Positions 14,315-40,000 are shown, counted from the stretch's first letter. The stretch is 64,000 bases of DNA from Penicillus capitatus (GCA_965649825.1 OZ287699.1:1084477-1148476), one strand, 5' to 3'. The notes: generated by a model not told the origin, from the sequence alone. A program made the numbers and translations.

Positions 14315-15868
14315 TCCTATGAAAAAAGAAAAGTGGGCACTTGCCGTTCCTCCATGCGGTCTCTCTAAAACGTACCGTCAAAGACGCATTCGTTACTCGA
14401 GGCTTAACGCTCGGCGTTGATTTTTAATATCCTGCGTTCTTTGCATAAGCCTCGCTTGACAATCCTTATCTTCGCTCGACGAAGTTCATTTGGTCTCAGT
14501 CGGACTTCAGTCTTCGCCTACCGCATTGAATCCTCTTTCCGTTCGCTTCGCAAAATCTCTCACGTGGAGAAGAAGCGTTCAGAATAAGTGCGCTTAGCTT
14601 ATCAAAATCGCCTTCTAAAATAATTCAACTGCCGATGACATAATGCACGATCTCTTCATAACTATGCACTGTCAAGAAACAAGAACTAGATGCACTAACC
14701 CCTATATTACAGTGCGGCTCTGTCCTAATAGTGGATGGCCCTATCTTGATGAAAGCCAAGGTAGAAGCTTCAGATTACGCAAAGAATGGCTTAATATGCC
14801 GGAGAATGATTGGGCGTTTATACGACGATGGACGTGACGTAACGTTTTCTTCCCCACAAAAACGGATTTCATTCAATAAAAGATGTCTTTTTCGTTCGCG
14901 CATACCTCTACAAAAACACAACCGTCCATCGCGCCACCTGTCGCCGAGTCCTGGCTCTCCGGCGTCCGCAAAGCATCGATGGACGATGCCGAATACGAGC
15001 AGCGATGGCGATCTGCATCGAACAGAGTCCGTTCTTTTCCGCATCTTGTCGTGCTGTTGGCGGCGCCACCGAAACGGCGCCAGAGTGCCACGGTTTCTCG
15101 GATTGAACAACATCGACGTCGATTGCCGCGAAGCGGTTGCCGCGACAGGCGATCCTGTCGATCGCGCGATCCATCGAAGACAAGATTCAACTTCGTGTTC
15201 AGAAACAGTCAAAATCCCTTTTTGCTTCCGCAATCGGCAAAGAACGAACGACTCTTCGTGCTGCGCCGTCCATCGCAGTCGACAAACACTGGGGACAGGT
15301 CTGTCTTCTATCAACCACAACCGTTTTCCAGACAGGACACGAGGTTATAGGGTTCATGATCGACGGACGGATTGATTGATCCAACCTTGAACGTTGTCCA
15401 GCCCCCTCGATACTTGAGCGAAAAACAACGTCTTTACGTCTGACTTTCTCTTCGAAAACTGTTGACACCGAAATCGACAATCCCGACTGAACCACCGACC
15501 CAGTTGAGCGGCAACGGAATGATTCCTTTTGACGTCTATCGTGTCTCCCTCGAATCCCCTCTCCAGATCACGTGCGCAAAACAACGGCTAAACTACTACT
15601 GGGCGAAGAAGTGCATCGTCCGTCGTATGTACGTCGGGGCGACATTGAATGAGATATATCCGTCAGCGTAAGGTACAGGACGACAAACTGCTGCCATCGC
15701 CAAGCTCGCCAGTACAACTCGTACACGTTTGCAGATGCAGTTCGTCATTTGTCATCGACGGCAGCGACCAATACGTCAGGTGAGTATACAGAAAAACGCA
15801 GGCCCGGCAAACGCAATGCTGCCTCATCGGCGAGACCCTCTCGACGCCGCAGAACGAAATGAAGGGAA

Positions 15869-16495
15869 CTAAGAGAAGCGGCGCGAGATGCCTCCGTAGA
15901 TCGAGATCATGGCGCCCGCTATGTATATGTACACGTAGGCAGGCAGCGTTTTGAGCTGCTCAGCCGAGAACATGTCCTTCATGGGCATCAACGGCGGCAG
16001 GTGATCCCCCTCGTGGGCGTCTTCCTGGGGCGTCAGCAGCTGCCTGTCTCGGTGAATGACGAGGGGCTTTGCGTCCGAGACATCCAGCAGAGGTCGCTCG
16101 GCGGCAAAGCGCACTCCATCGTTCTCGATGTGCTCCTGCTTGCACCCGTACATCGCGTAGAACCTCATTTCGCGGTGCTCCTGACACATGGCGCACGCAT
16201 GGCAGCAGCAATGCACACAACAGTCGTTGCATGGCACCGGCGGCAGACTGAACTTGCGTCTCAGGTGCTCGCGACGCGTCATTCCGAGCAGACAGGGAAC
16301 GCCCGGAATGCAGCAGGTCACCGTGTAGATGGCGCAGTCGGCGCAACACGAGCACGCGTCTTGACCGAGCAGGTACTCCCCGATGCGGGCGTAGCTGATG
16401 CACGGACACCAGCACGACAAGCAGCAGCTGCTTGCATCGCGCGAACAGTCAAACAGAGAGCCGCTGCGCCACTGGCCGAAAAGTGCCGAGGACAT
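15869..16495 (-). CDS. PLAC8 (Cys-rich, PCR/FW2.2-like) family protein, left-arm copy
   Basis: WRSGSLFDC...CCLSCWCPCISYARIGE...REHLRRKFSL....CNDCCVHCCCHACAMCQEHREM is the PLAC8 signature. ATG at 16495. Confidence 0.88.
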   Translation of the reverse strand: MSSALFGQWRSGSLFDCSRDASSCCLSCWCPCISYARIGEYLLGQDACSCCADCAIYTVTCCIPGVPCLLGMTRREHLRRKFSLPPVPCNDCCVHCCCHACAMCQEHREMRFYAMYGCKQEHIENDGVRFAAERPLLDVSDAKPLVIHRDRQLLTPQEDAHEGDHLPPLMPMKDMFSAEQLKTLPAYVYIYIAGAMISIYGGISRRFS

Positions 16496-16709
16496 CGCCG
16501 CGAACAAGCGCTTCTATCCCGCGCGTTAAGCGAAATGTTCGTCCATCTGATCCGCTCGCGCATTTCGCCGGTCACCGTTGACGCCGAGAGGCATTTCGCG
16601 GCTGTCGTGGACCGACAGGCTCGCCGGCAGATCGAAATCGATTCGCCTTCCGCCGTGACCGGCCCGAACCGATCGACCGTCCCGTCGCTGCATTCCGCGC
16701 GCTGCCCGT

Positions 16710-17552
16710 ATGTCGGAGACGGAGCTGCAGACGACGTTCTGGAGAGACGACGTGTGGCTCTCCCAGACGGCGCTGACGGCGGAGACCGCCCTGCGCGACT
16801 ACTTCTCGCTGTCGACGTTCTACGATCCGCAGTGCAACAACGAGACGATCAAGACGCTCGACCTCCCGTTCTCCGAGCTGCAGTGCGTCCGCCCGCGTCC
16901 TCCCCGTGCCGAAGGCTCTGTTCCCGCAGCACGCTCGCCCCCGGCGTGGAGTACGTGCTGGCGGCGGCGTCCGAGCCGGACCTCTTCGTCATCGAGAAGC
17001 AGCACAGGAGCGAGAGCCAGGAGACAACGCCTCTGGCCTACTACTACATCCTCTCCGGGACGGTCTACCAGGCGCCGGACCTCCACTCGGCCATCCGGGC
17101 AAAGTTGGGACGGCCCTCGGATGGAGATCGGCATCTCGGTGTTCGTCGTGAAGGGCCAAGAGGTGCCAGTTTCTGCTGGAGAAGAGCTTCCGGAGCTTCT
17201 CCAAGGCGTTCGATCCGCGCACGGCCCCCTCAAAGGAGTGAGAGACGGACGCCTCTTCGGGAAGAGGGTCGGATGACGGCGGCGCGTTTGCAGGTCCGAG
17301 GAGGCGAAGAGGAAGTTCGAGAGCCAGCAGGAGTGGGAGAAGATGAAGACGGGGACGGACGTCGTCAACGCCGTGCTCGCCAGGTGAGCGTGCCCGGCCT
17401 CGCCGTCCCTAATCCGCTGCTCTCTCTGCCTCAGCTACCCGACGGTGCCCGCCTCCGAGGCGCGCACGGCCCAGTCCCTCGCTCCTTCGATGAGCCAGTC
17501 CACGGCGACGGAGGGCGTGGCGAGGAGGCAGGGCTGGAAGGGCAGTCCGTGA
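16710..17552 (+). CDS. MED6: Mediator subunit 6, left-arm copy, five exons
   Basis: FWRDDVWL...ALRDYFSLSTFYDPQCNNE / GVEYVL....PDLFVIEKQ.R....TPLAYYYILSGTVYQAPDL. Short GT-AG introns join the frames to a TGA at 17550-17552. Confidence 0.9.
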
Positions 17553-17668
17553 GGCGCCGTCGAGGGCAGGTGCGAACGCCGACCGACGTCGCTTTCGCGA
17601 GACGGTGCGCGCGCCGTCGGACGTTGTCTTGAAGGCACCGCTGACGTTTCTGTAAGTCCCGGCGCGTC

Positions 17669-19646
17669 ATGCAGACCGTCTGCGAGAGCTCGTCCCCGGC
17701 GCGTCCGAGAGGCGACGTCTTCGCCGGCCTGTCTCCGTGCTCCCTCCTGGAAGGCCAGCGCGAGTCCCTGAACGCCTGCTACGCGGCCCTCCTGTCCGAG
17801 AGGGCAGCCGCCGAAACGCAGGTTCCCGACGCCTCTCCCTCCACCCTCTCACGCGCCCCGCAGAAGGAGAACGAGAAGCTCTGGGCGATCTTCGACGCGG
17901 CCCTGGAGACGGAGCACGTCGAGTTCCTGCACCGCTACGTGGAAGGTCCCGCTATGCCGGCCGGCCGGGCTCCGCGACAACGACGCGCTGTGGCTGCGTA
18001 GATGTCTGCTTCTCGCCGGATCTCCTGCCCTTCGGCCCCGACGCCTACCTGCACAGCACGCACGTCGTTCTGGACTGGTGTCAGAAGTTCCACGGCGATG
18101 CGGAGATTCAGATCCTGGAGGGCAGGCGGGACGCTCTGTCGCGCCTCCCTCGGAAGTGCGAGAGCGTGAAGGGCGTGCTCGGCCGCTGTCTGGACCGCCG
18201 AGAGGGGGATCCGGAGCGCAGACGGAAGAGGTCCGTCGTGGCCCGGCGGCTCCTGGAGACGACCGAGGGCGTCAGGCTGGCGGCGCTCGTGGCGTGCTGG
18301 CTGTGCCGTCTCGGCGCGTCCCCCGCGCCCAGGCGAGAGCGGATGGCCTCGCTGACTCCGGACGCGTACCTCTGCTCCCAGGACCTGCCTCCCATGTGGC
18401 TGGAGCACTACCCCTTTCGGGACGAGAACAGGATGATGGAGATCGTGTTCCTGAACAAGGACGACCTCGGCAGCACGCGGCTGAGGCACTGCAAGCTCGC
18501 CATGCTGGCGTTCTACCTGATGCACTCCGGCCGGGTCGACTCCCTGGAGTTCCTGGCCGAGCGGTTCGGCGTCGACCGTCCGAGGGCCAGGCTCTGGCAG
18601 GGCGTCTTCGCGGTGGACCTCTGTCTTCTGGAGAACGACTTCGGGACGGACGGCGTGATACAGTTCGCCGCCCAGTCGCTGAGGGACTCCGTCCACGAGC
18701 TCGGCGCGATGCTGCCGTTCGACACGATGATGAAGCTCGTGACGCTGGGATGCGGCGCCGACGTCAGGAGCATGTTCGTCCGGCACCTGTCCGCCTACCT
18801 CGACGCCCACTCGTGCCCCGTCTCCGTCGCCCGCCAGGGCGTGCTGTTCTGCCTGGTGTCGCGCGACGTCCCCGCCGGGCTGATGGTGGTGCGGAAGACG
18901 CTCCGGAAGCTGCACGCGACGACCGACGGGATGCTGCTGCTGCACCACCTCTACGACCAGTGCCTGGGGAACTCGCTGCTGGAGGATCTGGTGATGCAGG
19001 ACCTGACGGGAATGGAGGAGGCGGTCTTCGTCGACTGGGCCGGAGCGAAGAGGGACGATCCCGAGTGCAGCCTGTACCTGGCGCTCTACTTCTTCAGGCA
19101 GTCCAGACCGGAAACCGCCAAGGCGCTCTACCTCCTGAGCGCCGAGACGATGCGGCAGTCGACGCACCAGGCACCCCGCCACCCTCTCCTCCCGCCGTGA
19201 CGCGGCCTTCTGTTCTGCAGGACCTGTGGCGACAGCTCGGCGAGGGACTCGGGGGCACTTCCGTCACCGCCTCGGGCGAGGTCGACGGCAGGAGGCGTGC
19301 CGCCGCCGAGGAGGAGGCCGTCGAAAGCGGCGACTCCGTGGACGAAGAGACGGAGGGCGACGGAGAGGTCGCTGCTTTGGTCGGCGCCTGCCGCTCGGCG
19401 ATGCCGTTTCACCTCCAGCAGCTCGTCGGAGAATTCGATCGGTCGACGCCTCACCTGATGTCCTCGTACTCGGAGCTCATGAACTCCAAGAACTTCTGTC
19501 CGCTGCTCCCGGCAGAGGAGGAGGACCAGCCTGTCGCAGAGACGCATTCGTCGATGCAGGACGACAGTTCCGTGGAGATGGACATAGAGAGTGAGTCGGA
19601 TGATGATGCGGTTTTCTACGATGCAATGGAAACGCTTGAAGAGTGA
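17669..19646 (+). CDS. HOS1/ELYS-like nuclear-pore protein, left-arm copy, four exons
   Basis: KLWAIFDAALE...RYVEDVC...VVLDWCQK and YPFRD..MMEIVFL...KLAMLAFYL...FLAERFGV resemble the plant HOS1/ELYS region as I recall it. The last intron (19171-19220) is GC-AG. Acidic tail ends ETLEE*. Confidence 0.65.
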
Positions 19647-20868
19647 CATGTCTTTCATCAAAACTCCCGCCAGCACGAGAAGCGTGAGACGCATAAACTG
19701 TTTCTTAGCACGGTTTTTTAAGAGGACGATCTCCATTATGTCCATTCTGAAAGGCAATCTAGGACGACAGCATTTTCTACTTCGATGCTGCAGTTTTCTT
19801 TGCAAAGAAAGGAAACGAAAGTGAAAAACCGGGTCTTATGTCACAGATGCAGAAATGGTCGTGCCGGGTTGGAAGGATCCATTGTTCTGATGCTCTCCCC
19901 CCGTGCTTTTGTCAACAAATCTATTCTGCTGGGGCATGGCTCATGACAACCTCTGCTCTGGTGGACGCCATGTGCACCGGAAAGATAGCTTGGTCATCCA
20001 GTAGAGTTGACAGGAGTGATTGAATTACAAACGTGCTGTTGTTGCCTTTTTAGACTCGTAGTCGACGGCAACTGACTTCTTGGCGGCACAAAAGGATCAC
20101 ACTCCCAGGGTATTTGTATCTGTCTCTGTCGCTGACTGTCTGATGGGTGGAGTTCCTTTGACAGACGCCTTTAAACAGCGCGCATTTTTCGCGCGACTAA
20201 ATTACAGACCATGGCTGATTTTTACGTCTGACCTCATTGAACGATGCCATCCCTGTCCGATTGTTTTTCTCGTGCACTATCCTGTTCGCAGATTCGCAAA
20301 GAGTTTACGTTTACACAGCAAGTTGGGTTACCTAGGTCTATGTGGTTCTCTCTGGTTCCAATTAGGGGTATTTCGTTTCCGTACGAAATCTGCCAATCGA
20401 ATGTCGATGCATCTAAGACTGGCTCCGTGCTGTCTTAACATTAAGAAGGACACCTGAAGGCATACTCTTTTAGTCTGTACATACGGTCGGCAGTTTGACC
20501 TCCGTCCTGACACAGGCTAACGTCGCAATCGATAGAGTGAGGCTGTACAAACGGCAGTTTCCACCAATTGTATAGTTGGCATGGATAGGAAACCCCTCTG
20601 ACGCGGTTAAACACCGCAGGGATTCTCCTTCGTCGTCGACTCTCACGATGAGTCTCTGTGAACTCGACGCGTGTCTTCCGAAAATCTGTGCGGCAAGATC
20701 TTCTTTCGTATCGGACGCGATATCTGTCGTTATCGTCCGTTCGTCGTCCGTCTCTGGTTGAAGACCGCATTTCACCCGCGCGCAGGTGGGTTGTCAGATC
20801 TCTAACGGTAACATCCACCTTTTGGACGTCATCTAATGTCCACGTATTCTTGTTATCGTCTAATTCTC

Positions 20869-21912
20869 ATGCATTTTGCTTGTCATGAGTCGCGCAAACA
20901 CCTTCCGCCATCAGGCGACTTCAAGGACGACGAGACCGAGCCGGAAGAGGACTACGCTTTCTGGAGGCCATTTTCGCTGAGATATGAAAGGCTTGCTACC
21001 GAGAAAGACTTTCATTCCAGCGTGATTCCGGGATGGCACATGCGCGACGTCGTGGCGTATGCACTGAGTATTCCATTCGCACCCATTTTCTTCAAAGCGC
21101 TTGGACCCGAGATTCCATCGTGGCACGTTGCCGTCGTTGCCTTTATTTCTGGATTCTTTGCACCGCTCCAAGTGTTCGGCTTCATCAAACAGAGGTATGA
21201 ACCAAAAGTCTCTTTCCTGGATAAAAAGGATAAACGTCCTGTATAGGGTGCGGTATGCTCAGTTTCGTTTTGCATCCGTCGTTGTCGTGCGATGTGGCCT
21301 GGTGGTCTTCTTTGCTGCCATCTGCAGCTACTTTCACGCACCACATCCAACAAACACAGCTCTCTTGATGGCATTCTTGATGAAAACGCCAGTTCTTCCG
21401 CTCATCTTCATGTCATTCGGTCACCGGGTGGAATTCAGATACCATGTGCCAGTGCAAACCGCTGCCCTGTTATTGAGTCTGATTTGGGTGCCACTCTTCT
21501 GCCGAACATGCTCATCCGACCCGGAGATCTTTGAGGAAATCCAAAAGGCGAGGCTCCGCTAAAAGATAGATCCAACGTCGTGATTGACGACTGTGTGTAG
21601 TTTGGCTTTGATATCGATTCCGCCTTTACTCGTACCATACTGAACAAAGAACCTGATCCCACAGTTTACCCCTGTTGGATGGTTATGACATTTGCTCTCA
21701 TCGTCACGGGTTTTATCGTTCCTTGCTTTTTAGTTTTTGTTACCGAAGTCGACCTCCGTAAAAAATTTCTCCTCTCCAGAATGTCTCAAAAATTCCACCT
21801 TGGTATTCATGGATATGCGCTGCATGCAATAAAAGTTGCGGTCACGGCATTTGCAGCCACCGTTTTAGGAACATGGTTCTGTCTGTCTTCTGCAAGAGAT
21901 CTCTTTTATTAG
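20869..21912 (+). CDS. Unnamed multi-TM family protein, copy 4
   Basis: FWRPFSLRY, HRVEFRYH, LFCRTC, YPCWM, EVDLRKKFL; three exons. An alternative ATG lies at 20836. Confidence 0.8.
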
Positions 21913-23403
21913 TCTGTCTCACAGCGCAGAATTCTACTGCAACGCTTGGGATCTTGCTTTTCGTTTGGCAATGCAAATTAACGATTTCCTGGCTTCTTAA
22001 TCGGGATGTATATGCATCTACATGTTCTTTAGAGTGCAACTCCTTTATCATCGATGTTTTCTGATCGATGGACGACTGAAACTATTGCCTTTGAGAATAG
22101 ACTGCCTGTCCGATTTGACATAGCATTCTTAATGCCCGCCGAGTAGTGTGGCGAGAACAGTCGCTTCGTCCAGAACGGCTATCGAAGCGTACCAATGCGT
22201 CTGTGTGTACTCAATTCGTTCTCTCTCGACTGGCAATCATTTGATTCAAAGAATCAGAAGAGAAACATTTTACCTGAATCTGTATTAAAACATATCCAGT
22301 TAGAATGCGAATTGACGAAGATCAGTTGGAATCGGAATAAGGAAGATTCGATCATCATCTACTGAAGATGAAATAGAACAATCCTCGGTGGGACATATCT
22401 CGACGTCTGGAACACATCTCAAACGGCGGGCATTTGGATGTTTTCATAGTTAAATCTCTTTCGGTTAGTGTGAAGAAGATCTTTGCAGATCAATCCCGTC
22501 GATTTCAAATCGTCAACGTTGGTGTTCTAAATGAGAAGGGCAAGTGGTGAAAAGGCTTATCGACCCAGTGTCGTAGCTCAGCGCCACGATGGAAGACATT
22601 ATGTTTGTTATGTTAATGTTGTGAAGATAGTGTAATCTCCTTGGTGGATGACTTTCGCAAACGTGCCGCTCCGAGCATCGTGAGAACGCTCGTCCTTGTG
22701 TATAGACATCAGATGATCGTCGCTGTGGCACTCTTTTCTGAAAGGGCACGATTTACAGCATGCTTATACTCTCTGCTAATAGTGTGAGTGGAGATGTCTA
22801 TCGTCATTGTGACGAAAGAATAGCACGCCAAGATCGAGGGAAGTTGTGATCGCTTGCGAGAAACGGCTCTCCTTGACGATAACATCACCTTGATACTCAA
22901 TCCGTTATCTGCAAGTTCCGTTTTCACAATGACATCGCTATGGCTGCCTTCGCATTTCGGTGGATTCGGAAAGAAAGATGCACAACATCATCCTTTTGAG
23001 TTTCTTAGAATAGCAGTTCGAGGCACCCGCGACTTAGAGATAAAGGTTTTTCGTCTCAGATTGTCGACACAGTGGTTGTTGTTCTTTAATAGCCAATACG
23101 GCAGCGAGCACGAGACATAGCTGCACCCTATTTCTCGTTGTGTAACTTTGGACGTCAAAACGTGCCTGCGTCTCAAGAGCCTCTTCTCCTTAAACCATTG
23201 CCGACGTTATGTTTTGTATGCGCAGACAGATGGTTCTGCAGATAGATTCCCACGGGACTGGCGGTTTGCAACATTGCTGCGTAACTTCTGAAGACACCGA
23301 GCCGGTCATTTGAACTATTCTCTTCCCTACAGCACTCCTGTGCATTGTTGAACGAAAACCTCTCCACGAAGAGATTCCTCGCGACTGCTCATCCTATATG
23401 AGC

Positions 23404-24416
23404 ATGGAGAAGGAATTGGCAAAGTTAGTTTGTTCGTCACCCTTCTCAATAGGAGAGGTTATGCTGAAAGGACTATCTACCGGAACTCGAGACACGTCTG
23501 GTACTTTCAGGACATCATGGCGTACCTTGTCAGTATTCTTTTCCTTCCGATTTTCTTCCGCAACTTCGAGCTCGAGAACGATTCATGGCACGTGATGTTG
23601 ATCGTTTTGGAAACAATGCTCATCGGGCCACTCCAGATACACTTCTGTTTCACGGACAGGTTCGCCACGCACACTTGAGGAGAATGCCTATCGAGGGGAT
23701 TTATGCAGAGCGACGTCGAGACGCCATCGATCTGTGCTAATAGCTTCCGTACGAATGGCGATGGCTTTCTTTATCGCACTATTGTCTATCAACAGTGAAG
23801 TTCAGAGACCCACACTCTCTGTCGTTCTTATGACACTCTTGTTCAAATCACCGGTCACACATCTGATGTTCACAGCACTCCATCGCCGACTTGAATTCCG
23901 ATGCCATATTCTCATCCATGCTACGATGCTCTTGTTTTCGGCACTGTACTGGATTCCGCCTTTCTGTCGAAACTGTTCCAAAGACTCAGCCGTTCGAGAG
24001 ATATTCCAACAAGTACTATCCCTATTGCAAAGTGTGCGTGCTCATGATGGAATTCTCTCTAGATTGGCTGCGGAATCGATTTGATGTTTTCCGTTGTGCT
24101 CCCTAATGAAATGCCGGCTGTGCGAGTTTATCCGTGTTGGATGATATCATCTCTAGTTTTCATCGTTTTAGGTTTGATTGTGCCATCGTTGTTAGTCTTT
24201 GTCACCGAGATTTTAGCTCGAAGGGCCTTTCTCCTATCCACACTGTCGCACAGATTTCATCGCGACATCTTTTATTTTTCAAATGAGGCAATAAAGATTA
24301 CCCTCTTGGCTTCTTTGTCAGGCATTTCGGCATCCTGGCTCTGTTTGCTGATTGCAAGGGACTCATTTCACGCACAGACGTCGACTTTCACCTCATGTCA
24401 GCAAATTGACCACTGA
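23404..24416 (+). pseudogene. Unnamed multi-TM family, copy 5, with an apparent frameshift in exon 1
   Basis: The SPFSI motif (~23440) is in a different frame from the ERTIYR..W.FQD that follows. Exons 2 and 3 are intact (RRLEFRCH, PFCRNC, IGCGID, YPCWM, EILARRAFL). Confidence 0.6.
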
Positions 24417-25544
24417 ATCAAGTGCTGGGAATGCACAGTGCGCATTCCGGGGGTATATCTGTGAGAGTATCTGACAATGAAAAGCTATCTATCGTCTGTG
24501 CACTGCATCAACCTTTGCTGATAGATGTCGGTAGCCTCTGTTGGCCCTGCATGGTCGAGAACGATTGGTTTGTATGGTGTCACTGTTTGCGCGATCTCTT
24601 ATTCTGAGCAAGTTTTTCATAATGGTGTGTGCTGTTTTTCTTCAAAAATATGATCTCGGACGATGCGACTAGATTCGTGAGAATGTTTACAGCAGTCAAT
24701 GCCACTGAAGTCTTTGATGGGAAGCATCATGTCAAGACCATGATGGTCTGTACAATGTAAGAAACTGCGTGTGTGGTCATTTGAGAAATGGATCTCGAAA
24801 ATTACCGCCAGGATTTGGAAGAAAGACTCGAGTGAGTGAGTGATCCTTTTCGAGTTGACTGTCGTCGAGAATCTATTCAGACATCGCGAGTTGGACATTT
24901 TGGGCATCATCTAAAGCATAATCAACAAACCTGAACCGTTATGCATTAGGTCGGAGGCGTCAAGAACGGCATGAGATAATCTTAGATTCCGTTCCAATAG
25001 AACCTTGAACGAAAGCGACTCGTAAATTTCTGTCGGTCGGTCCTTACATCGCTCAATCTATTTCAGAAGTCGTCTGTGCACTGGTTACTTCATCCTGTCT
25101 CTGCTCGTGCGAAACGTTGACGCGTCCTCTTCAGAGAGTCGTACTCATGGCTTTCGGTCTTCACTTACGGAAACCGATTCAGGTCGCTATCGAAGTCTAT
25201 GATCGTCACGCGGCTCCGTTTCGAAATCAAACAGAGAACATAGGCGTCGTTTTGCGGTCGAGAAATCAGTTAACCGATGGGTCGGCACTAGCGGGGGTGC
25301 CGTCCAACAGGTAACCACTTCCCAAGTCAACTATTGGCGCAGAAGTTGCAACACAATCAGCGCGTAGAGAGTGCTGAGCTTTGTGCTCACTACCGTTCTT
25401 TTCAAGGCCGCGGTATTTCGATGAAGGCGCCCGCTTCACGAATAGGTCCTTCCTAACCGTCCTGCCCCTTCTGAACCCCGTCTTTGCCTGTACATTAGCT
25501 TGTACCTTTGACGGGCGTATTACTTTGCGACACGAAAGGTTTTT

Positions 25545-28665: not shown

Positions 28666-31600
28666 CGTATCTCACCAGAGCTCGCTGAGCAGCGATCTTT
28701 GACTCTCATTAAACGCGCAAGTAGAGAGCACATTCCATGGCAAATGATGCAGATGCAACGCCTTCCTCTAACTGACTCAAACTGTCTTTTTGTTTCTTTG
28801 ACTTCAAACCAAACTCGTTCTCGAGGATTAGCAGCTTTGGAGATTTCTCCTGGATCCTTAATGCTGCTTTCCTCTACGGACTTTTACTGTAGCAACATTC
28901 GCTGTCGCTTAGTGTACGGGTGGATCGACGCTGTTTTCTGGAATACTGTGGAACTCTGTTGATAGATCTTGGCAACTGCACATGGATGAAGTGATGGACG
29001 ATTACAATTATTATATATTTGTCCTGCATGAAAACCAAACCACTGTGAATAGGGTAATGAAACTGTTGGGTTGTGAACCAAAACAGGTAGGGCAATTCTC
29101 AGTCCCTCCACCGAACTCTTACTATTGTCTGCCTGACGCCCACTAGTTACTGGCCAACTTGTCGCTGTTTCGCAAAGATGACATGTATGTGCACGCGAGT
29201 ATCACTTCGACAGATCGGTTTTTTGCGTGCTACCATAAATACACGAAATTTCGTGTTTAAGCATCCCTAGTCATGCTTTGTAGTCTCTGTGGAGTCCTGA
29301 CACGGCTATCCAAACAGTCCTGTCACCGTTCTGATGATCAAGTGATAGTTTTCATGGGGGTGAAGCCTTTTCCTACAAACTCCGAATTGCAAGTCAACTG
29401 CGTATCGTTACTGGCTTGATTTCTCGGCGGAAAACTTTGCTCGGAAAAGCACTAGGCACTTTTGTGGCCAGTTGAGATACAGTTGAATGTTAAGAATTTT
29501 CCAGGTGTCTCATCTCGAACCATGGATCGAAGGAAAAGCATAGATGTTCTTATTTGAATAAGAGAAACTGCAAGGCACCATAAACGCAATCATTTTTGAG
29601 GAAAGGAGATGGCTCCCATAAAATGCGGCAACTTCAAAAGCAAAGGTGGAACTCGGAGATAATAAAGAAGAAAGAACTTCTCAATACTGGAAACGTTCCA
29701 CCGAAAATGCCAGAGGCTGTAGATTCTGAGTCTGCTAAATTCTACAATTTTTGCGAACCATAAGCTGACATTACCTTCAAAACTATTGGACATGGGTGAC
29801 ACGTATCTGCGGATAACACCAGCCGAAATCGTAGAAACTATGTTTTTGTTTGACCGAAGCCGGCCTTTTTCCTAATGTTAACTCCACAAGCACAAGTTTC
29901 CTCTCTGAGTTTTAGTCCAGCTCCTAAGTCTGGTTTTTCTCACCTGTATAATGAATAAAACAACTCATCAAGTGTGCGCGGAATAGACATCATAGAGTCC
30001 AGAGTCTACACCCGTTTTTGCCATGAGCGGACGATCTGTAACTCGATCTAGCTTAATGCGCGTCGTCGTGTCTGTCCATGACGTTTTATCACATGGATGA
30101 CGAAAACAAGCACTAGCTTAAGCACGGACAATTGAATCTAACGTGTGTTGGACGAAAGGATCGCCAAAGGGTACGTTAAGCGCGAAAGATGATGCTTCGG
30201 AGTTTATTTGTTGATAGACTCGCAAAGACCATCCCACCTGGTGAAGTAAAATTCTACTGCCTCAGCCGTCGCGATCAGGAGGACTAACATAATCTCACCT
30301 TCTTCTAAGAACAGATTCTCTTCGTCAACAGCAGAAGCACCGTTAACGTGTTCATATTGGCAAGAATCATTACTTGACAACCCTCTTGAGCTTCAGTAGT
30401 TGCGATTAGCCTATCATATACGGTGTGGATAGTGTTACTCGACATTCCCCAAAACAACACTCTAAATAAACCGTCCCACAGGTCCGGCTTGGATGAGCTG
30501 CATCAGTAGTTCCATGACCTTTTGTCTAAAAGAAAGCCGTTCTTTCAGGATGAATTGTCTCTATATTTAATAGATCGTGCCGAGCGTATATCATCCAAAT
30601 TATGATGTTTCGTAATCACACAGTTGTCTCCGACTTGTCCGGCAAGGTATGCAAGTCAAGCAGCTTTTCCGCATGCCTCCACACTAATTTCAGAATGAGA
30701 GGGTTTTGCTATAGTATTCTAATCCAAAGAGTGTCCGGGAAAACGTTTCGCTGACAATATTGTGTAAAACTTCCTCGAATCATCAGATACCTCTTTCCTG
30801 TTTGGGAGACAGTTGCAGCAAATAGCTCAGAGGCGACAAGAATCTGCATTGAAATAAAGTCCAATGACTCGAAGAAGAAAATCTAAACACGAGCCGGTCT
30901 TTTCTACAGTCCTATTCAACCGAGTACTCCAAGTCGTTGACTTTAGGATGATGATTGTCGCAATGACACAAGAGTTATGAAAAATTCTTATGGCGACGTT
31001 CGAAGGCTGTGAGGATTGAATACATGATATCTTGAAAATGAAGTCCACTCGAACGTTCCGATTTGTCACCTACTTGCTTAATGACTATCATTGTCGCCGG
31101 TCAGCCGGACGAAAAGATAACATCGGAAGGCTTCTGTTACAAGTGCTCGGAGCAAGATCCTGAATGGTTCGAACTGTCCATTATGTACTCGCATGATGAC
31201 GTGACAGTCTAGGAAGCTGAGTCATTAAAGTCTTAGAACGAGAGAATTGCGTCCCCTGACGCAGTTGAACTCCATTTCAGAAGACAGGAGCGTCCCTTGA
31301 CATAGATGACCCCCTCATCACAGGACAATCACATCACCCAGAACAACTCTTGGCGACAGTCATTGCTTTTGGGTGTCACATCGTGTTCTCCTAGGGACTG
31401 CCTCGTCTTCCCGGGGTCCTGTCTTCCAAGGGGCACTCGCACGGGGTTCGCGGCTTCTTAGTTGTGTTTTCCTCTGGCTCTGAGAGCCCGCCTGCTCACT
31501 TATCTAGGGAAGTCTTTTCACATGTAGCCTATGAACCGGCGAACGAGAATCTTAGAACACTTCTACTCTGTGAGCTTGAAAGTCTTCTGTTGTATGATTT

Positions 31601-33309
31601 TAGAAGCACGGCGCAACCGGCGCGACACAGTTTGTATGTCGAATCATTAAGAATTGCATTTGTATGTTCGAAGGCATTTGTCGAAAAGATCTGGTTGTCA
31701 CATTGTGACTGTCTAGATTTCCCAGGGTTCTGTCTCCGAAGAGGCGCTTATACGACGTGTCATGTCACCTGTGACATACAAAGACATGAGCGTAAACACG
31801 TGTATACCTTTTGCTCTGTAATCAGTGGAGCCTTCCTCTGACAGCATTCCCGTCACATTGTGAGAAATTCGTATGCGTCTTGACATAAGTTCATCCTAAG
31901 ATTCAACAAGATTTCACAGCACTAGCGTGAAATGACATGAAACCTGAATAGATGCGAGATAGGAGAACTAACGAGAGTGTTTTGATTGTGTGAGATTTCA
32001 TCTGTTCTCTGTCGGCGCTCCGAAAAGATAAGCAGAGACGTTTCTGGCGACGGTTGAGGGCTGTCAGCGCGAAGACGCAGGATCTGATGGAACTTGGAAA
32101 CGTATGCTTTTGAAGTGGATGGCCTGAATAGGTAGGTATTCTGGGTTTGAATCGAGATGATGAGGCCTGTGAGCATATAATCTGCCGAACGATCGAGACG
32201 AGTTCATCATTATTGTTAAATTATCGGTTACGTTCTGGCCGCTCGTTTTGCGCGCGTCTGAAGCTCGCGATGAAACGGCTTCCGCCAACAGCGTCTGTTT
32301 AAAGGGCTTTCGAGTAGTCGTGTCAGTGGTTGCTGCTGATATGTGCGCGTCAATAAAACGTCGTTGTCAATCGCGAACACGTAGACACTGGCTAGTTTCT
32401 GTAAAGAATGGCGAAATTCCACGTTTTCCGAGATCGCAGCGATGCCGGTATCGACGGCAAAACTGGCCTGCCGGATGTAGACGACACCGATATCTCAGTA
32501 GAAACCTCGAGGCGATGCAAAATGAAGGAATTCTGGCGATGGTGGTCAGAGGACGAGAAAACGAGTACAACGTGACAGTCAGTCAGCATCACGTGTGGAC
32601 CTTCCCGCGCTTGAAACTGCGATAATAGGTGTTATACGAGGAAGAATTAAACTATTTAGCAAACTACAAAGATTCTCGGCAGATTTGCGCCTGGTGTGGA
32701 ACCGTCACTTGTTCTTAAGGGAACATGAATTCCGCAAATAATGAATAACTTTACTCACGATATAATCCTGCAGGTACCTATTTTGACATCATCCTGTTAA
32801 AGCGTTTACCTTTCGAGCCTTTGTAGAAACTCCGTGCCTCGATTACGGCAAACATTGTCGCTGGCCAGGCCGCATGGCGAGAACGAACAAAAAAGACTTG
32901 CAACTGTGTCTGGGGCAAGGTCTTGTTTAACTCAAAAACGCATTTTATATCCTCATGATGACACGACTTCCTAAGCAGTCAAGTCAACATATCCCTAAAA
33001 CCAGAGAAAAGGTGTCTCTTTGATGCCATGAGACATCTATCCGGGGCAGCAACGAGGTACAATATCGACGACAAAAAAGGCCGACAAAGATCTTGAACAC
33101 CTGCTATATCTCAGTTAACATTCCACAGCCAGGAGCTGTAACTCATAACTTACACACACCGAGAGTGTCGCCGAATAGTATAATAACATCGAGGCCGCAA
33201 CAGAAGAAAGACCGATGAACATTAAAACAAGAGCATCTGCACTTTGTTTTATAGACTAACGTCACATCCATCGACAGTGATGTTTTTCTTTTTTTGAGTT
33301 AGCACGAGA

Positions 33310-35290
33310 TTAAGAAATGATCACTGTTTCCATTGCATCGTAGAAAACTGCATCATCATCCGACTCGCTCTCTGTGCCCATCTCCACGGAACTGTCGTCC
33401 TGCATCGACGAATGCGTCTCTGCGACAGGCTGGTCCTCCTCCTCTGCCGGGAGCAGCGGACAGAAGTTCTTGGAGTTCATGAGCTCCGAGTACGAGGACA
33501 TCAGGTGAGGCGTCGACCGATCGAATTCTCCGACGAGCTGCTGGAGGTGAAACGGCATCGCCGAGCGGCAGGCGCCGACCAAAGCAGCGACCTCTCCGTC
33601 GCCCTCCGTCTCTTCGTCCACGGAGTCGCCGCTTTCGACGGCCTCCTCCTCGGCGGCGGCACGCCTCCTGCCGTCGACCTCGCCCGAGGCGGTGACGGAA
33701 GTGCCCCCGAGTCCCTCGCCGAGCTGTCGCCACAGGTCCTGCAGAACAGAAGGCCGCGTCACGGCGGGAGGAGAGGGTGGCGGGGTGCCTGGTGCGTCGA
33801 CTGCCGCATCGTCTCGGCGCTCAGGAGGTAGAGCGCCTTGGCGGTTTCCGGTCTGGACTGCCTGAAGAAGTAGAGCGCCAGGTACAGGCTGCACTCGGGA
33901 TCGTCCCTCTTCGCTCCGGCCCAGTCGACGAAGACCGCCTCCTCCATTCCCGTCAGGTCCTGCATCACCAGATCCTCCAGCAGCGAGTTCCCCAGGCACT
34001 GGTCGTAGAGGTGGTGCAGCAGCAGCATCCCGTCGGTCGTCGCGTGCAGCTTCCGGAGCGTCTTCCGCACCACCATCAGCCCGGCGGGGACGTCGCGCGA
34101 CACCAGGCAGAACAGCACGCCCTGGCGGGCGACGGAGACGGGGCACGAGTGGGCGTCGAGGTAGGCGGACAGGTGCCGGACGAACATGCTCCTGACGTCG
34201 GCGCCGCATCCCAGCGTCACGAGCTTCATCATCGTGTCGAACGGCAGCATCGCGCCGAGCTCGTGGACGGAGTCCCTCAGCGACTGGGCGGCGAACTGTA
34301 TCACGCCGTCCGTCCCGAAGTCGTTCTCCAGGAGACAGAGGTCCACCGCGAAGACGCCCTGCCACAGCCTGGCCCTCGGACGGTCGACGCCGAACCGCTC
34401 GGCCAGGAACTCCAGGGAGTCGACCCGGCCGGAGTGCATCAGGTAGAACGCCAGCATGGCGAGCTTGCAGTGCCTCAGCCGCGTGCTGCCGAGGTCGTCC
34501 TTGTTCAGGAACACGATCTCCATCATCCTGTTCTCGTCCCGAAAGGGGTAGTGCTCCAGCCACATGGGAGGCAGGTCCTGGGAGCAGAGGTACGCGTCCG
34601 GAGTCAGCGAGGCCATCCGCTCTCGCCTGGGCGCGGGGGACGCACCGAGACGGCACAGCCAGCACGCCACGAGCGCCGCCAGCCTGACGCCCTCGGTCGT
34701 CTTCAGGAGCCGCCGGGCCACGACGGACCTCTTCCGTCGGCGCTCCGGATCCCCCTCTCGGCGGTCCAGACAGCGGCCGAGCACGCCCTTCACGCTCTCG
34801 CACTTCCGAGGGAGGCGCGACAGAGCGTCCCGCCTGCCCTCCAGGATCTGAATCTCCGCATCGCCGTGGAACTTCTGACACCAGTCCAGAACGACGTGCG
34901 TGCTGTGCAGGTAGGCGTCGGGGCCGAAGGGCAGGAGATCCGGCGAGAAGCAGACATCTACGCAGCCACAGCGCGTCGTTGTCGCGGAGCCCGGCCGGCC
35001 GGCATAGCGGGACCTTCCACGTAGCGGTGCAGGAACTCGACGTGCTCCGTCTCCAGGGCCGCGTCGAAGATCGCCCAGAGCTTCTCGTTCTCCTTCTGCG
35101 GGGCGCGTGAGAGGGTGGAGGGAGAGGCGTCGGGAACCTGCGTTTCGGCGGCTGCCCTCTCGGACAGGAGGGCCGCGTAGCAGGCGTTCAGGGACTCGCG
35201 CTGGCCTTCCAGGAGGGAGCACGGAGACAGGCCGGCGAAGACGTCGCCTCTCGGACGCGCCGGGGACGAGCTCTCGCAGACGGTCTGCAT
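33310..35290 (-). CDS. HOS1/ELYS-like protein, right-arm copy
   Basis: Near-identical to 17669-19646 (one E>K change, a D-I>G-T change near the end, several synonymous changes). It ends ETVIIS* outside the repeat. Confidence 0.65.
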
Positions 35291-35406
35291 GACGCGCCGG
35301 GACTTACAGAAACGTCAGCGGTGCCTTCAAGACAACGTCCGACGGCGCGCGCACCGTCTCGCGAAAGCGACGTCGGTCGGCGTTCGCACCTGCCCTCGAC
35401 GGCGCC

Positions 35407-36249
35407 TCACGGACTGCCCTTCCAGCCCTGCCTCCTCGCCACGCCCTCCGTCGCCGTGGACTGGCTCATCGAAGGAGCGAGGGACTGGGCCGTGCGCGCC
35501 TCGGAGGCGGGCACCGTCGGGTAGCTGAGGCAGAGAGAGCAGCGGATTAGGGACGGCGAGGCCGGGCACGCTCACCTGGCGAGCACGGCGTTGACGACGT
35601 CCGTCCCCGTCTTCATCTTCTCCCACTCCTGCTGGCTCTCGAACTTCCTCTTCGCCTCCTCGGACCTGCAAACGCGCCGCCGTCATCCGACCCTCTTCCC
35701 GAAGAGGCGTCCGTCTCTCACTCCTTTGAGGGGGCCGTGCGCGGATCGAACGCCTTGGAGAAGCTCCGGAAGCTCTTCTCCAGCAGAAACTGGCACCTCT
35801 TGGCCCTTCACGACGAACACCGAGATGTCGATCTCCATCCGAGGGCCGTCCCAACTTTGCCCGGATGGCCGAGTGGAGGTCCGGCGCCTGGTAGACCGTC
35901 CCGGAGAGGATGTAGTAGTAGGCCAGAGGCGTTGTCTCCTGGCTCTCGCTCCTGTGCTGCTTCTCGATGACGAAGAGGTCCGGCTCGGACGCCGCCGCCA
36001 GCACGTACTCCACGCCGGGGGCGAGCGTGCTGCGGGAACAGAGCCTTCGGCACGGGGAGGACGCGGGCGGACGCACTGCAGCTCGGAGAACGGGAGGTCG
36101 AGCGTCTTGATCGTCTCGTTGTTGCACTGCGGATCGTAGAACGTCGACAGCGAGAAGTAGTCGCGCAGGGCGGTCTCCGCCGTCAGCGCCGTCTGGGAGA
36201 GCCACACGTCGTCTCTCCAGAACGTCGTCTGCAGCTCCGTCTCCGACAT
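35407..36249 (-). CDS. MED6: Mediator subunit 6, right-arm copy
   Basis: Mirror of 16710-17552. The only difference I noted lies in a predicted intron. Confidence 0.9.
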
Positions 36250-36463
36250 ACGGGCAGCGCGCGGAATGCAGCGACGGGACGGTCGATCGGTTCGGGCCGG
36301 TCACGGCGGAAGGCGAATCGATTTCGATCTGCCGGCGAGCCTGTCGGTCCACGACAGCCGCGAAATGCCTCTCGGCGTCAACGGTGACCGGCGAAATGCG
36401 CGAGCGGATCAGATGGACGAACATTTCGCTTAACGCGCGGGATAGAAGCGCTTGTTCGCGGCG

Positions 36464-37090
36464 ATGTCCTCGGCACTTTTCGGCCAGTGGCGCAGCGGCT
36501 CTCTGTTTGACTGTTCGCGCGATGCAAGCAGCTGCTGCTTGTCGTGCTGGTGTCCGTGCATCAGCTACGCCCGCATCGGGGAGTACCTGCTCGGTCAAGA
36601 CGCGTGCTCGTGTTGCGCCGACTGCGCCATCTACACGGCGACCTGCTGCATTCCGGGCGTTCCCTGTCTGCTCGGAATGACGCGTCGCGAGCACCTGAGA
36701 CGCAAGTTCAGTCTGCCGCCGGTGCCATGCAACGACTGTTGTGTGCATTGCTGCTGCCATGCGTGCGCCATGTGTCAGGAGCACCGCGAAATGAGGTTCT
36801 ACGCGATGTACGGGTGCAAGCAGGAGCACATCGAGAACGATGGAGTGCGCTTTGCCGCCGAGCGACCTCTGCTGGATGTCTCGGACGCAAAGCCCCTCGT
36901 CATTCACCGAGACAGGCAGCTGCTGACGCCCCAGGAAGACACCCACGAGGGGGATCACCTGCCGCCGTTGTTGCCCATGAAGGACGTGTTCTCGGCAGAG
37001 CAGCTCAAAACGCTGCCTGCCTACGTGTACATATACATAGCGGGCGCCATGATCTCGATCTACGGAGGCATCTCGCGCCGCTTCTCTTAG
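36464..37090 (+). CDS. PLAC8 family protein, right-arm copy
   Basis: Mirror of 15869-16495 with V>A, A>T, M>L and M>V differences. Confidence 0.88.
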   Translation: MSSALFGQWRSGSLFDCSRDASSCCLSCWCPCISYARIGEYLLGQDACSCCADCAIYTATCCIPGVPCLLGMTRREHLRRKFSLPPVPCNDCCVHCCCHACAMCQEHREMRFYAMYGCKQEHIENDGVRFAAERPLLDVSDAKPLVIHRDRQLLTPQEDTHEGDHLPPLLPMKDVFSAEQLKTLPAYVYIYIAGAMISIYGGISRRFS

Positions 37091-40000
37091 TTCCCTTCAT
37101 TTCGTTCTGCGGCGCTGAGAGGGTCTCGCCGATGAGGCAGCATTGCGTTTGCCGGGCCTGCGTTTTTCTGTATACTCACCTGACGTATTGGTCGCTGCCG
37201 TCGATGACAAATGACGAACTGCATCTGCGAGCGTGTACGAGTTGAACTGGCGAGCTTGGCGATGGCAGCAGTTTGTCGTCCTGTACCTGACTCTGACGGA
37301 TATATCTCATTCAATGTCGCCCCGACGTACATACGACGGACGATGCACTTCTTCGCCCAGTAGTAGTTTAGCCGTTGTTTTGCGCACGTGATCTGGAGAG
37401 GGGATTCGAGGGAGACACGATAGACGTCAAAAGGAATCATTCCGTTGCCACTCAACTGGGTCGGTGGTTCAGTTGGGATTGTCGATTTCGGTGTCAACAG
37501 TTTTCGAAGAGAAAGTCAGACATGAAGACGTTGTTTTTCGCTCAAGTATCGAGGGGGCTGGACAACGTTCAAGGTTGGATCAATCAATCCGTTCGTCGAT
37601 CATGAACCCTATAACCTCGTGTCCTGTCGGGAAAACGGTTGTGGTTGATAGAAGACAGACCTGTCCCCAGTGTTTGTCGACTGCGATGGACGGCGCAGCA
37701 CGAAGAGTCGTTCTTTGCCGATTGCGGAAGCAAAAAGGGATTTTGACTGTTTCTGAACACGAAGTTGAATCTTGTCTTCGATGGATCGCGCGATCGACAG
37801 GATCGCCTGTCGCGGCAACCGCTTCGCGGCAATCGACGTCGATGTTGTTCAATCCGAGAAACCGTGGCACTCTGGCGCCGTTTCGGTGGCGCCGCCAACA
37901 GCACGACAAGATGCGGAAAAGAACAGACTCTGTTCGATGCAGATCGCCATCGCTGCTCGTATTCGGCATCGTCCATCGATGCTTTGCGGACGCCGGAGAG
38001 CCAGGACTCGGCGACAGGTGGCGCGATGGACGGTTGTGTTCTAGACCCATTCAGACAAAACGACATCGCCTGTCTGTGAACAGCCAAGAGCTCGCTTCCA
38101 TATAACATTTGAATTCGAAAACCCCGCTAAAGAATGCGTCTTTACTCGATTCTCTTCTCCTGAATTCCCTCTTCTCTACGCGCCCACTGCTTTCTGCTGC
38201 TGTGTTCTTTCAAATTCGAGCTACGCTTCAGCGACACGTTCAGTCATTCGCGCCTTGTTCTTTGCTATCATCGGCAGCATTGAGTGTCTCTTTATCGACT
38301 TTTTACTACCCGTTCGTCAGACAAAGCCTTGTTTCAGTCACAAGTAATCCCAAACTCCCAAACAACTGTGCTATAGTCTCCGACAGTGGAGAAGAACGTG
38401 TTAGAAAATCCATTTGCCTGTTGTATTTTCGACATGCATGGGTAGATTAGATCGTCAGGAAGATTAATTCTTATAACTTGCTCCAAATAGTTTTACACAC
38501 AGGCAGTTGTTGATTGACTGACAGGCTTAAGCAAGACGCGACTGCATCTTTGTTTTCAGAGAAGGGTCGGTAGAGGGATTTGAATGGTCAGGTCGTGCAA
38601 CAACCCACTTGGTAAAAACCATGGTTACAACAAATTGTCAAGGGCTGAGTTGGCTCCATAAAGAAAGACATCAGAAACAACAACAACAACAAGTCGGATT
38701 CGGGAGAGTTAGATTAAACGGGTTCGTCAGTGTGTATCGTTGGGAAGAGTTGTCTTAAAGATCAACCGCAACAACAACAACAGAAATGTTAAAGAACCAT
38801 AATAGCCGCGGAGCAATTCTTGAACAGCTAAACGTCAAAATACGTCGGACTGAGTAAGAAAACTGCCGAGTGCAAAAGAGGACATCTGAGGTGAAAATCC
38901 TTATACCTCTCTGCAGCGCCTGCGAATACCACCGTTCATTAAATGTTCCCAAATCAAAAATGTGTATGAATAAACATGCGTCCTGTCTCCCTGCCTGATT
39001 GTGCACACTCCAGTTTTGGTACAGGATGAGTGGCAAGACTGGAGCAGTAGATGGCATCAGAGAAACCGCAAAGACATCATGTGGAGTATTTTTCAGTCAT
39101 GACGCATCAGCAGCAGTTTGGCGATCGTCCGTTGCTATTCAATCCTCATCATCAGACTCGTCGCCGAACCGTAACAGCAAGACTAAGTAGCCAAAGGGTC
39201 ATGGAATGGATAGACACCGTCCAACCACCCCAGAGAGCGCACGCCAGAAATCATTGATTGCTCTTGTGGTGTGCGTGTGCTTCCAGAGTGTTCTTAGCCT
39301 TCAGCATAATGATCAGCCAGAGTAGTATCGACATGCAGAACAGAAAAATGAATGCGGTGCGAGTTGTTATTTCTTGACAAAAAGATCCGTCCTAAATAAT
39401 AAGGCCTGTTTCAGGCGCCCTGCTTCACAATCTCGCCCCGATCAGCAGTTGCTCCATGCGGTTGGGTGGGCATCTATGGCACTTCCACTGTTTGCTTGGT
39501 CATTGTCTGTGATAACAGCCAAGGCTGAAGGCAAGCGGCAGAGTGAGTGCATCCACAAGGCAGAAAGCGATGAATCAAACAATACAGAAAAATGGGATTG
39601 CCTGAAGCTGGGCTGCAAATAATGCGCTGATTGATAAGCAGAAAGAGGGTGTCGAACGCGATTGGAAAGTCACATAATATGTTCTTCTTCTTCTTCGCCA
39701 AACATCGGGACACAAGAATCCAGTTTTAACAGTAAAGGAGGACGTCTGTCTACCTTCTGCTTTCTAGCACCATCGTTAAAGCAGTGGAGACAATGGATGT
39801 ATCTTTATTCAGAATAAAAACTGTTGGGGCACACCACACATCCGCAGGCAAGCAAATGTATGTCCTTGCTCGAATGATATCCCCGGTACGGCCCATCTGC
39901 ACAAACTGAAAGAAAAGAGAAAGAGTGGAAAACCACAAATCGGCTGTAATGAATCGGACATTGCTGCAGGAGAAACGAGATATCGTCAGATCTTTCTGAG

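Follow-up and report, generated by a model that had tools for sequence, protein, structure and literature searches.

The window analysed here is a stretch of 64,000 nucleotides (nt) from Penicillus capitatus (GCA_965649825.1 OZ287699.1:1084477-1148476), in which all positions are counted from the first letter. It contains two arms of 4.7 kb that face each other as an inverted pair across a unique spacer, and each arm carries three intact-looking genes, namely PLAC8, MED6 and a gene that we call ELYS-like. We consider it likely that the pair is an ancient inverted segmental duplication of nuclear DNA whose arms have been homogenised by gene conversion and thereby driven to a high content of guanine and cytosine (GC). 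For comparison, contigs of 824 and 960 kb at 188x from a sister species (ERZ26696514), which are 99.4% alike and apparently represent two haplotigs, were used together with an 8.2-kb, 4x contig from another sample of the same species as the window (L001; 98-99% identity) and with two distant relatives (L003 and L004; ~50% protein identity).

The arms and their genes

A repeat search and a self-BLAST of the window both recovered the inverted pair (14915-19633 versus 38040-33326), which extends over 4719 bp with 99.30% identity. Thus, the arm coordinates and the 13.7-kb spacer that had been reported in an earlier interpretation of the same DNA, made without database searches (the sequence-only reading), were borne out (Table 1). 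The repeat search splits the pair into two matches (14915-15247/37708-38040 and 15243-19633/33326-37716), which are joined into a single one by self-BLAST. A base-by-base alignment of the arms revealed 29 substitutions and one insertion/deletion (indel) of 4 bp, the latter being present in the left arm only (15242-15245). The gap between the arms consists of 13,692 bp of unique DNA, and the self-BLAST of the 64 kb did not uncover a second internal homology comparable to the arm pair. The similarity breaks off sharply at all four arm ends. Neither terminal inverted repeats (TIRs) nor short terminal repeats were found at these ends, and no target site duplication (TSD) was detected at the breakpoints beyond a chance 2-bp 'CT', in agreement with what the sequence-only reading had stated. 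Moreover, the window does not contain a single N.

The PLAC8 domain reaches 84.9 bits with a Pfam cut-off of 34.4, and both copies of the gene are intact. MED6 is recognised by PF04934 in exons 1 and 2, with 39.5 and 61.6 bits (5.7e-10 and 8.8e-17; cut-off 27), and a four-exon model predicted from the nucleotide sequence is in frame and would yield a protein of 172-175 amino acids (aa) with introns of 47-59 nt. The ELYS-like gene appears to have kept both of its intron positions in L003 and L004, the two distant relatives; a base-by-base check was made of the second position. The inner breakpoint of the duplication lies 13 nt ahead of the stop codon of this gene. Because of this, the right copy reads on into the spacer and ends with ...METVIIS; the ...METLEE end of the left copy is the one found in the gene of the sister species. 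At the donor site of the second intron, both arms and L001 have GC, and the sister species (CAG/GTATCC), L003 and L004 have GT. If this intron remained unspliced, the predicted protein would stop at ...HPLLPP and lack the last 142 residues, among them the FFAT-like motif described below.

The C-terminus of the ELYS-like protein consists of an acidic tract followed by the motif [VAEI]F[YF]DA[MI]E, which is conserved in all relatives and encoded at 19611-19631 (+) and 33328-33348 (-). The motif reads VFYDAME in the window, EFFDAME in L003, AFYDAME in L004 and IFYDAIE in the sister species, and it presumably resembles the FFAT (VAP-binding) motif. The breakpoint of the duplication lies 2 nt past it. 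In L003 and L004, the ELYS-like gene is followed by a convergent gene for a DEAH-type RNA helicase (L003:3098-4008 and L004:2190-2706) instead of the membrane-protein array. Therefore, the synteny seen in the window is restricted to a closer clade.

The identity of the third gene deserves a separate comment. Among 5.8 billion proteins, its only relatives are four metagenomic open reading frames (ORFs), one of which (P0003, 53% identical) weakly matches the ELYS family PF13934 (2.3e-6). Pfam searches with the window protein (as the 487-aa ORF and as the 623-aa spliced product) and with the sister orthologue yielded no match at E<=0.1-1, and a profile search of the PDB with the ELYS-like protein yielded nothing. 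An AlphaFold (AF2) model of exon 2 is all-alpha with a mean predicted local distance difference test (pLDDT) score of 61. The top Foldseek match of this model is 7vci_T from the nuclear ring of the Xenopus nuclear pore, followed by the further pore chains 9hcj_T0, 7wb4_n and 9sob_T; the matches include pore chains of Dictyostelium and Arabidopsis. These matches have E values of 1e-3 to 2e-2 and template modelling (TM) scores of 0.40-0.44, and generic TPR proteins are interleaved with them. Taken together, the label ELYS-like is plausible but weakly supported. By contrast, the sequence lends no support to the alternative label HOS1-like, and a RING or zinc-finger family was sought by Pfam in the full protein and was not found. 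Thus, of the gene content given in the sequence-only reading, PLAC8 and MED6 are upheld by Pfam, the ELYS part is retained with reservation and the HOS1 part lacks support.

Table 1 Positions of the arms, the spacer and the arm-borne genes in the window
Feature	Position	Strand	Remarks
Left arm	14915..19633	+	Repeat search, alignment and self-BLAST; left flank (A) - arm - spacer collinear in sister species (L008/L010)
Right arm	33326..38040	-	Same searches; 38040/38041 junction also in L001 and in sister species (L013/L014)
Unique 13.7-kb spacer	19634..33325	.	20400-30934 collinear with sister species beside its left copy
Outer edge zone of arm	14915..16320	.	20/30 arm-arm differences (1.42%); lower GC
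Inner edge zone	19582..19633	.	4 arm-arm differences in 52 bp
GC-rich arm core	15800..19450	.	0.60-0.73 GC in 100-300 bp bins; mirror ~33510-37160
PLAC8, left copy	15869..16495	-	Single exon, 208 aa; Pfam PF04749 8e-24; P0005 orthologue 88% identical, of equal length
PLAC8, right copy	36464..37090	+	Compared with left copy: 4 replacement differences, 1 silent
MED6, left copy	16710..17387	+	Predicted exons 16710-16882, 16930-17103, 17154 or 17163-17237, 17294-17387
MED6, right copy	35572..36249	-	Coding sequence same as left; sole difference 17131/35828, in intron 2
ELYS-like, left copy	17669..19646	+	623 aa; exons 17669-17945, 18002-19170, 19221-19646; end ...FYDAMETLEE (stop)
ELYS-like, right copy	33310..35290	-	624 aa; new 3' end ...METVIIS (stop)
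ELYS-like intron 2, GC donor	19171..19220	+	CAG/GCACCC...CAG; mirror 33739-33788 (-)

Age of the duplication and concerted evolution of the arms

The contigs of the sister species are collinear with window positions 4642-30934, that is with the left flank, the whole left arm and the spacer. From a patatin/DUF7794 block onwards, the same sister contig is also collinear with window positions 64000-50566 and 48947-38041, and the alignment runs unbroken through the 38041/38040 junction into a second arm copy, which can be followed to 35407 and comprises the outer part, PLAC8 and MED6. This junction aligns base for base, and the repeat of the sister species itself starts at most a few bp away from window position 14915. 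Two species that have diverged by 17-19% have both outer junctions in common, and therefore the duplication is older than their separation. The two copies of the sister species have the same orientation, lie ~193 kb from each other and differ by 8%. Of the four junctions, three (3/4) were seen in independent assemblies (L001, L008-L011, L013/L014). We are thus confident that the inverted duplication is real and ancient, and the earlier claim that both copies are real stands, since the outer junctions were found in the sister species.

Other derivations of the arrangement were tried and rejected. A lineage-specific insertion of the right arm was discarded because the sister contig passes from the right flank into the second copy. 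A staggered-break inversion, which would make the left outer junction a novelty and L001 the ancestral single-copy state, was likewise discarded because the A - arm - spacer order is collinear in the sister species.

The 2.35 kb of the spacer that adjoin the inner end of the right arm (30975-33325) do not contain a Pfam-matching ORF, and no counterpart was found in the fetched loci of the sister species by blastn and tblastx. A protein search with the spacer ORF adjoining the inner junction of the right arm yielded nothing, and neither did a scan of the JGI metagenomes with the ELYS alignment for more contigs of the species or clade.

Between 14915 and 17552, a stretch of 2.6 kb for which all four copies are available, every one of the informative sites (337/337) groups the two arms of the window with each other and the two copies of the sister species with each other. 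The number of sites supporting a grouping of orthologous arms is 0 in this stretch, as is the number supporting the third possible grouping. The identities are 99.2% between the window arms, 91.9% between the sister copies and 81-83% between window and sister species. Since the duplication is old and the copies nevertheless group by species, their similarity must have been upheld by gene conversion. Judged from these site patterns, the arms have in all probability undergone concerted evolution through arm-to-arm gene conversion. Furthermore, 65 changes (in 63 aligned columns) are common to both arms and unlike L001.

The differences that remain between the arms are unevenly distributed. The non-genic outer 954 bp hold 14 substitutions and the indel, PLAC8 contains five differences, the ELYS-like gene nine (6 silent and 3 replacement) and MED6 a single, intronic one. 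The divergence between the arms is 1.42% in the outer 1.4 kb and 0.18% in the central 3.3 kb, as compared with 2.06% and 1.10%, respectively, for the divergence from strain L001. Relative to the divergence between strains, the arm-arm divergence is thus far lower in the centre than in the outer part (Fisher p = 0.006). The clustering of arm-specific differences at both edges is probably attributable to conversion that fades toward the ends of homology, and it would fit conversion tracts that seldom reach these ends.

The GC island and the competing explanations

The arms form a GC island, with a GC content of 0.62-0.72 compared to 0.41-0.52 on either side. The GC content at third codon positions (GC3) of the arm genes is 0.78-0.96 according to the first ORF estimates and 0.79-0.96 in the aligned coding sequences (CDS), as opposed to 0.42-0.62 in 11 other ORFs of the window, and the GC content at second codon positions (GC2) is ordinary. 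The orthologues in L003 and L004 have a GC content of 0.40-0.50. The restriction of the island to the arms, with GC3 values of up to 0.96, is the most striking feature of the locus and is absent from the sequence-only reading.

The direction of the shift was assessed by comparing the window with the orthologue in the left copy of the sister species. Sites that have G/C in the window where the relative has A/T are denoted S/W, and those with the reverse W/S. In the arm, 517 S/W sites stand against 136 W/S sites, and the excess increases from the outer non-genic part (81:39, i.e. 2.1) to the PLAC8-MED6 part (201:48, i.e. 4.2) and the ELYS part (235:49, i.e. 4.8). By contrast, ten control segments from the left flank, the spacer and the gene-rich block, covering 27 kb, sum to 1913 versus 1939 with ratios of 0.81-1.22 (arm versus pooled controls p = 3e-47). 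The S/W excess is found in every arm bin of 100-270 bp, intergenic DNA included (26:4 and 36:8). Directly past position 19633, the counts are 11:11, 16:15, 15:17 and 26:22, so that there is a step at 19633/19634. The outer non-genic 0.9 kb of the arm (81:39) also differ from the nearest alignable flank (212:263; p = 9e-6).

These observations can be explained by biased conversion between the arms, which we hold to be the probable, if not firmly established, main cause of the GC island. They can also be explained without it. An allelic (meiotic) hotspot or selection for GC-rich codons or expression may have generated the island, and the duplication would then have copied a block that was already rich in GC. 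This alternative is unlikely. Selection on codons fails because the intergenic and intronic DNA of the arms is as biased as the coding DNA, and a general tendency of genes to be GC-rich is excluded because the gene-rich control block of 13 kb is unbiased (ratios of 0.89-1.19). The outer non-genic part of the arm is biased by 2:1 next to an unbiased flank, and the bias of a meiotic hotspot would be expected to tail off gradually rather than to end at a breakpoint. Moreover, GC decays in the sister species, where homogenisation has lapsed. Its copy-specific changes from GC to AT outnumber those from AT to GC in all three comparisons (72:26, 47:16 and 40:6), as biased conversion predicts after a lapse, given that these copies lie ~193 kb from each other in direct orientation and homogenisation between them has ceased. 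Since the sister species is losing GC, the block must already have been GC-rich in the common ancestor.

Several points weigh against biased conversion as the source of the island or against the reading as a whole, and some of them speak for the alternative just described. The copies of the sister species are also GC-richer than their flanks (0.53-0.58 versus 0.46) even though they no longer form a palindrome; therefore, part of the island is either older than the present arrangement or due to something else. The inferred ancestor of the sister's ELYS fragments had a GC content of ~0.61. On the inner side, the arm and the bias both stop where the ELYS-like gene ends, so that the limits of arm and gene are confounded, and the outer non-genic part, being the cleaner test, shows the weaker bias. 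About 30% of the S/W sites in the 3' part of the ELYS-like gene (40/136) are GC losses in the sister species. Within the window species, the changes common to both arms are 10 from AT to GC and 6 from GC to AT, and those private to one arm are 4 and 8, respectively. These polarised counts are small (10:6 versus 4:8) and not significant, and the polarity of the GC shift is thus only partly resolved. For the palindromes of the primate X chromosome, simulated conversion since the split of human and macaque explains less than 20% of the GC excess (PMC8981503). As regards the duplication itself, the inner junction of the right arm (33325/33326) is seen in the window assembly only, and the ancestral copies may have been either inverted at a distance of 13.7 kb or direct at a distance of ~193 kb.

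That the pair is a young, lineage-specific duplication, the differences of which have been kept silent by purifying selection, is very improbable. The divergence of the arms is indeed low (~0.6%), and the count of four silent differences and one E>K replacement given by the sequence-only reading for the long ELYS-like exon (its HOS1-like exon) is exact, so that 4/5 of the differences in this exon are silent. However, a young origin is at odds with the sharing of both outer junctions by species that are 17-19% diverged, with the site patterns of 337:0 and with the heterogeneity of arm-arm relative to strain divergence. When all CDS are considered, synonymous and non-synonymous differences between the arms number 7 each (one-sided p = 0.04 in a comparison with neutrality). 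This split lies only weakly below the neutral expectation, and a few mostly silent differences say little about constraint. Hence, the constraint that the sequence-only reading deduced from the mostly silent differences, and the recent origin implicit in it, were not confirmed; the shared junctions and the 337/337 sites point to conversion instead.

Equally hard to sustain is the view that the pair is an assembly artefact, either a fold-back chimera or a second haplotype placed in inverted orientation. In its favour, the arm divergence (0.7%) is near the divergence between the haplotypes of the sister species (0.63%, L008 versus L009). It is contradicted by the lack of Ns, the 13.7-kb unique spacer, the different flanks of the arms, the recovery of three junctions in independent assemblies and the two-copy state on two haplotigs of the sister species, and a haplotype artefact would be unable to produce the 33325/33326 junction. 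The concern of the sequence-only reading about such an artefact is thus largely answered from the assemblies, and what persists of it relates to the 33325/33326 junction.

Further evidence against an artefact comes from L001, in which the order is right flank (40803-38041), arm and left end of the spacer (19634-20400). At arm-diagnostic sites of this 4x contig, right-type alleles prevail in the outer part next to the right flank (14:6), and left-type alleles prevail in the inner part next to the spacer (9:1; p = 0.005), i.e. the allele types match the flanks. L001 may therefore be the expected product of a crossover between the arms, located between 16320 and 17131, by which the spacer was flipped and the four junctions were left unchanged. 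Against this, the same picture would arise if a 4x assembly had been led through the repeat as a chimera. Judging from its name alone, which is in the style of a long-read metagenome assembler, L001 would rather be a real molecule. Being a mosaic of right and left types, it was dropped as an outgroup for polarising the arm differences.

A mobile element, be it a foldback or long-TIR transposon or a Pack-type capture, shares the outline of long inverted repeats around an internal segment but can practically be dismissed, as TSDs and short terminal repeats are lacking, scans of spacer and flank ORFs yielded no transposase, integrase or reverse-transcriptase domain, the spacer consists of orthologous DNA of the host that is collinear in the sister species, and the arms consist of complete host genes with promoters and introns without further copies in the window.

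Returning to an ancient duplication that is homogenised by conversion, the following course of events can be proposed. The 4.7-kb PLAC8-MED6-ELYS-like block was copied in inverted orientation before the species split, as the shared junctions show, and the arms have since overwritten each other repeatedly by intrachromosomal gene conversion, as shown by the cross-species site patterns. To judge from the distribution of the differences, conversion would be strongest in the arm centre and weaker toward the ends of homology. A preference for G/C during conversion is the most likely force that drove the segment, coding and non-coding DNA alike, to high GC, with the bias ending at the arm boundary. 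A T>C change that made a GC donor out of the conserved GT splice donor of the ELYS-like gene in both arms may have been fixed in this way, and a crossover between the arms would invert the spacer. A more far-reaching version, which we put forward tentatively and with considerable doubt, is that the autosomal mini-palindrome acts as a long-lived conversion engine that has kept the duplicate sets of three housekeeping genes almost alike from before the speciation onwards, raises GC3 above 0.9, spreads weakly deleterious AT>GC changes, such as that in the splice donor, to both copies and flips the spacer between strains. The sister species would then be a lapsed control, its copies having become direct and distant, that has lost an ELYS copy and undergoes GC decay.

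Surroundings of the arms and comparison with known systems

In the sister species, the block equivalent to window positions 38-64 kb is inverted relative to the left-arm locus. Small pieces from ~57 kb and ~64 kb (window 56856-57308 and 63929-63988) occur there as reciprocal inverted duplicates, one near the 64-kb end of the block (L006:5656-6113) and the other at the equivalent of window position ~57.5 kb (L006:12733-12792). The pattern points to additional nested inversions that duplicated sequence at their breakpoints. The sister species also has a third copy that is partial and has decayed (L002/L005/L006/L007; contig position ~258-282 kb). It comprises the 3' half of the ELYS-like gene in frameshifted pieces and 12 kb of duplicated spacer, and its identity to the sister's left locus is 84-95%. 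This copy is interrupted by a retrotransposon (RVT_1 and rve) as well as by a block that begins at L010:6009 and is found three to four times, and its pieces are in permuted order. The rearranged second locus of the sister species (S' copy, ELYS fragments and L010:6009 block) was kept out of the main claims.

A family of paralogous multi-exon ORFs, all on the + strand, is represented in the left flank (8983-10373) and, in tandem, in the spacer (20836-21562, 25637-26272 and 27534-28665). The members share the motifs FWKPFSLRF...E and RLEFRYH.PVQT and apparently encode membrane proteins, the array is collinear in the sister species, and Pfam searches with these ORFs did not yield a match. The left flank also contains a short tandem repeat at 11097-11265 that encodes a (VADLHICCRT)n-like ORF, as well as two direct repeats of 137 bp (13350-13486 and 13913-14049, 563 bp apart), and positions 13107-14963 cannot be aligned with the sister species. 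A glutamine-rich ORF at 40822-41358 (-), ~3 kb from the right arm, has a sub-threshold match to Med14 (E = 0.012), which is probably a low-complexity artefact. Scans of the window for tRNAs and Rfam families gave no matches.

The locus is an unusually clean and small example of a known phenomenon, namely a palindrome that is homogenised by conversion. Like the palindromes of the primate X and Y chromosomes (P6 and 12 conserved ones on the X), it has inverted arms that are more than 99% identical, a unique spacer and an arrangement that is conserved across species. Moreover, the arms are closer within than between species, the GC content of the arms exceeds that of the flanks and the replacements are biased from AT to GC. 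On the primate X chromosome, the arms have 46% GC and the flanks 41%, and derived bases are GC-enriched in the arms only; according to the authors, recent conversion explains only part of the GC excess (PMC8981503). For the human Y palindrome P6, GC-biased conversion, multi-kilobase tracts and rare spacer inversions are reported (PMC3723533). Inversion of the spacer by arm-arm crossover is thus rare in primate palindromes, and in P. capitatus the linkage in the 4x contig L001 is a candidate for it.

The differences are equally clear. The arms of sex-chromosome palindromes are far larger than 4.7 kb, whereas the locus described here has arms of just this size, gives no evidence of a sex chromosome and resides in a host with introns of ~50 nt. 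The genes in its arms are housekeeping genes of single-copy types (MED6 and a nucleoporin) rather than testis-expressed families. In addition, the effect on GC is far larger, amounting to ~+15-20 points relative to the flanks with GC3 values of up to 0.96, as compared with ~+4-5 points in primates.

Copies that are kept identical by recombination are also known from the inverted repeats of plastids and from the yeast 2-micron plasmid, in which a crossover inverts the middle part and gives rise to two isomers. By analogy, the linkage seen in L001 could correspond to such an isomer with unchanged junctions. However, these systems are organellar or plasmid-borne and some have a recombinase (FLP), whereas the window locus lies on a chromosome and does not encode a recombinase, and its flip is only a candidate. 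Frequent non-allelic conversion is accompanied by raised GC in multigene families such as rDNA (ribosomal DNA) arrays, histone genes and human segmental duplications (PMC8981503). Those families are mostly tandem or dispersed with many copies, in contrast to the two-copy inverted pair of a three-gene block described here.

The staggered-break model has been described for inversion breakpoints in Drosophila and Anopheles. As in this model, an inverted duplicate flanks a segment of differing orientation, given that the B-P block (38-64 kb) is inverted between window and sister species. However, the model predicts one new outer junction, and both outer junctions are common to the two species. Due to these shared junctions and the collinear A - arm - spacer order, a staggered break fails to explain the origin of the duplication in the sampled lineages.

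Most documented cases of conversion-maintained palindromes come from mammalian sex chromosomes, on which GC is raised by a few percentage points for reasons that are still debated. The locus in P. capitatus is small enough to be covered by single long reads or by polymerase chain reaction, lies in an ordinary gene-dense region and involves essential genes that are normally single-copy, and its shift in composition is very large and has sharp limits. The sister species provides a built-in comparison, as the same copies no longer form a close inverted pair there, are 8% diverged and are losing GC. For genome annotation, the message is that the near-identity of such arms is no guide to the date of a duplication. 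If our interpretation is true, the change of the splice donor would be a candidate example of the cost of conversion, and the locus would serve as a compact natural experiment outside animals, in which the strength of GC-biased conversion could be studied together with the geometry of its tracts and its cost.

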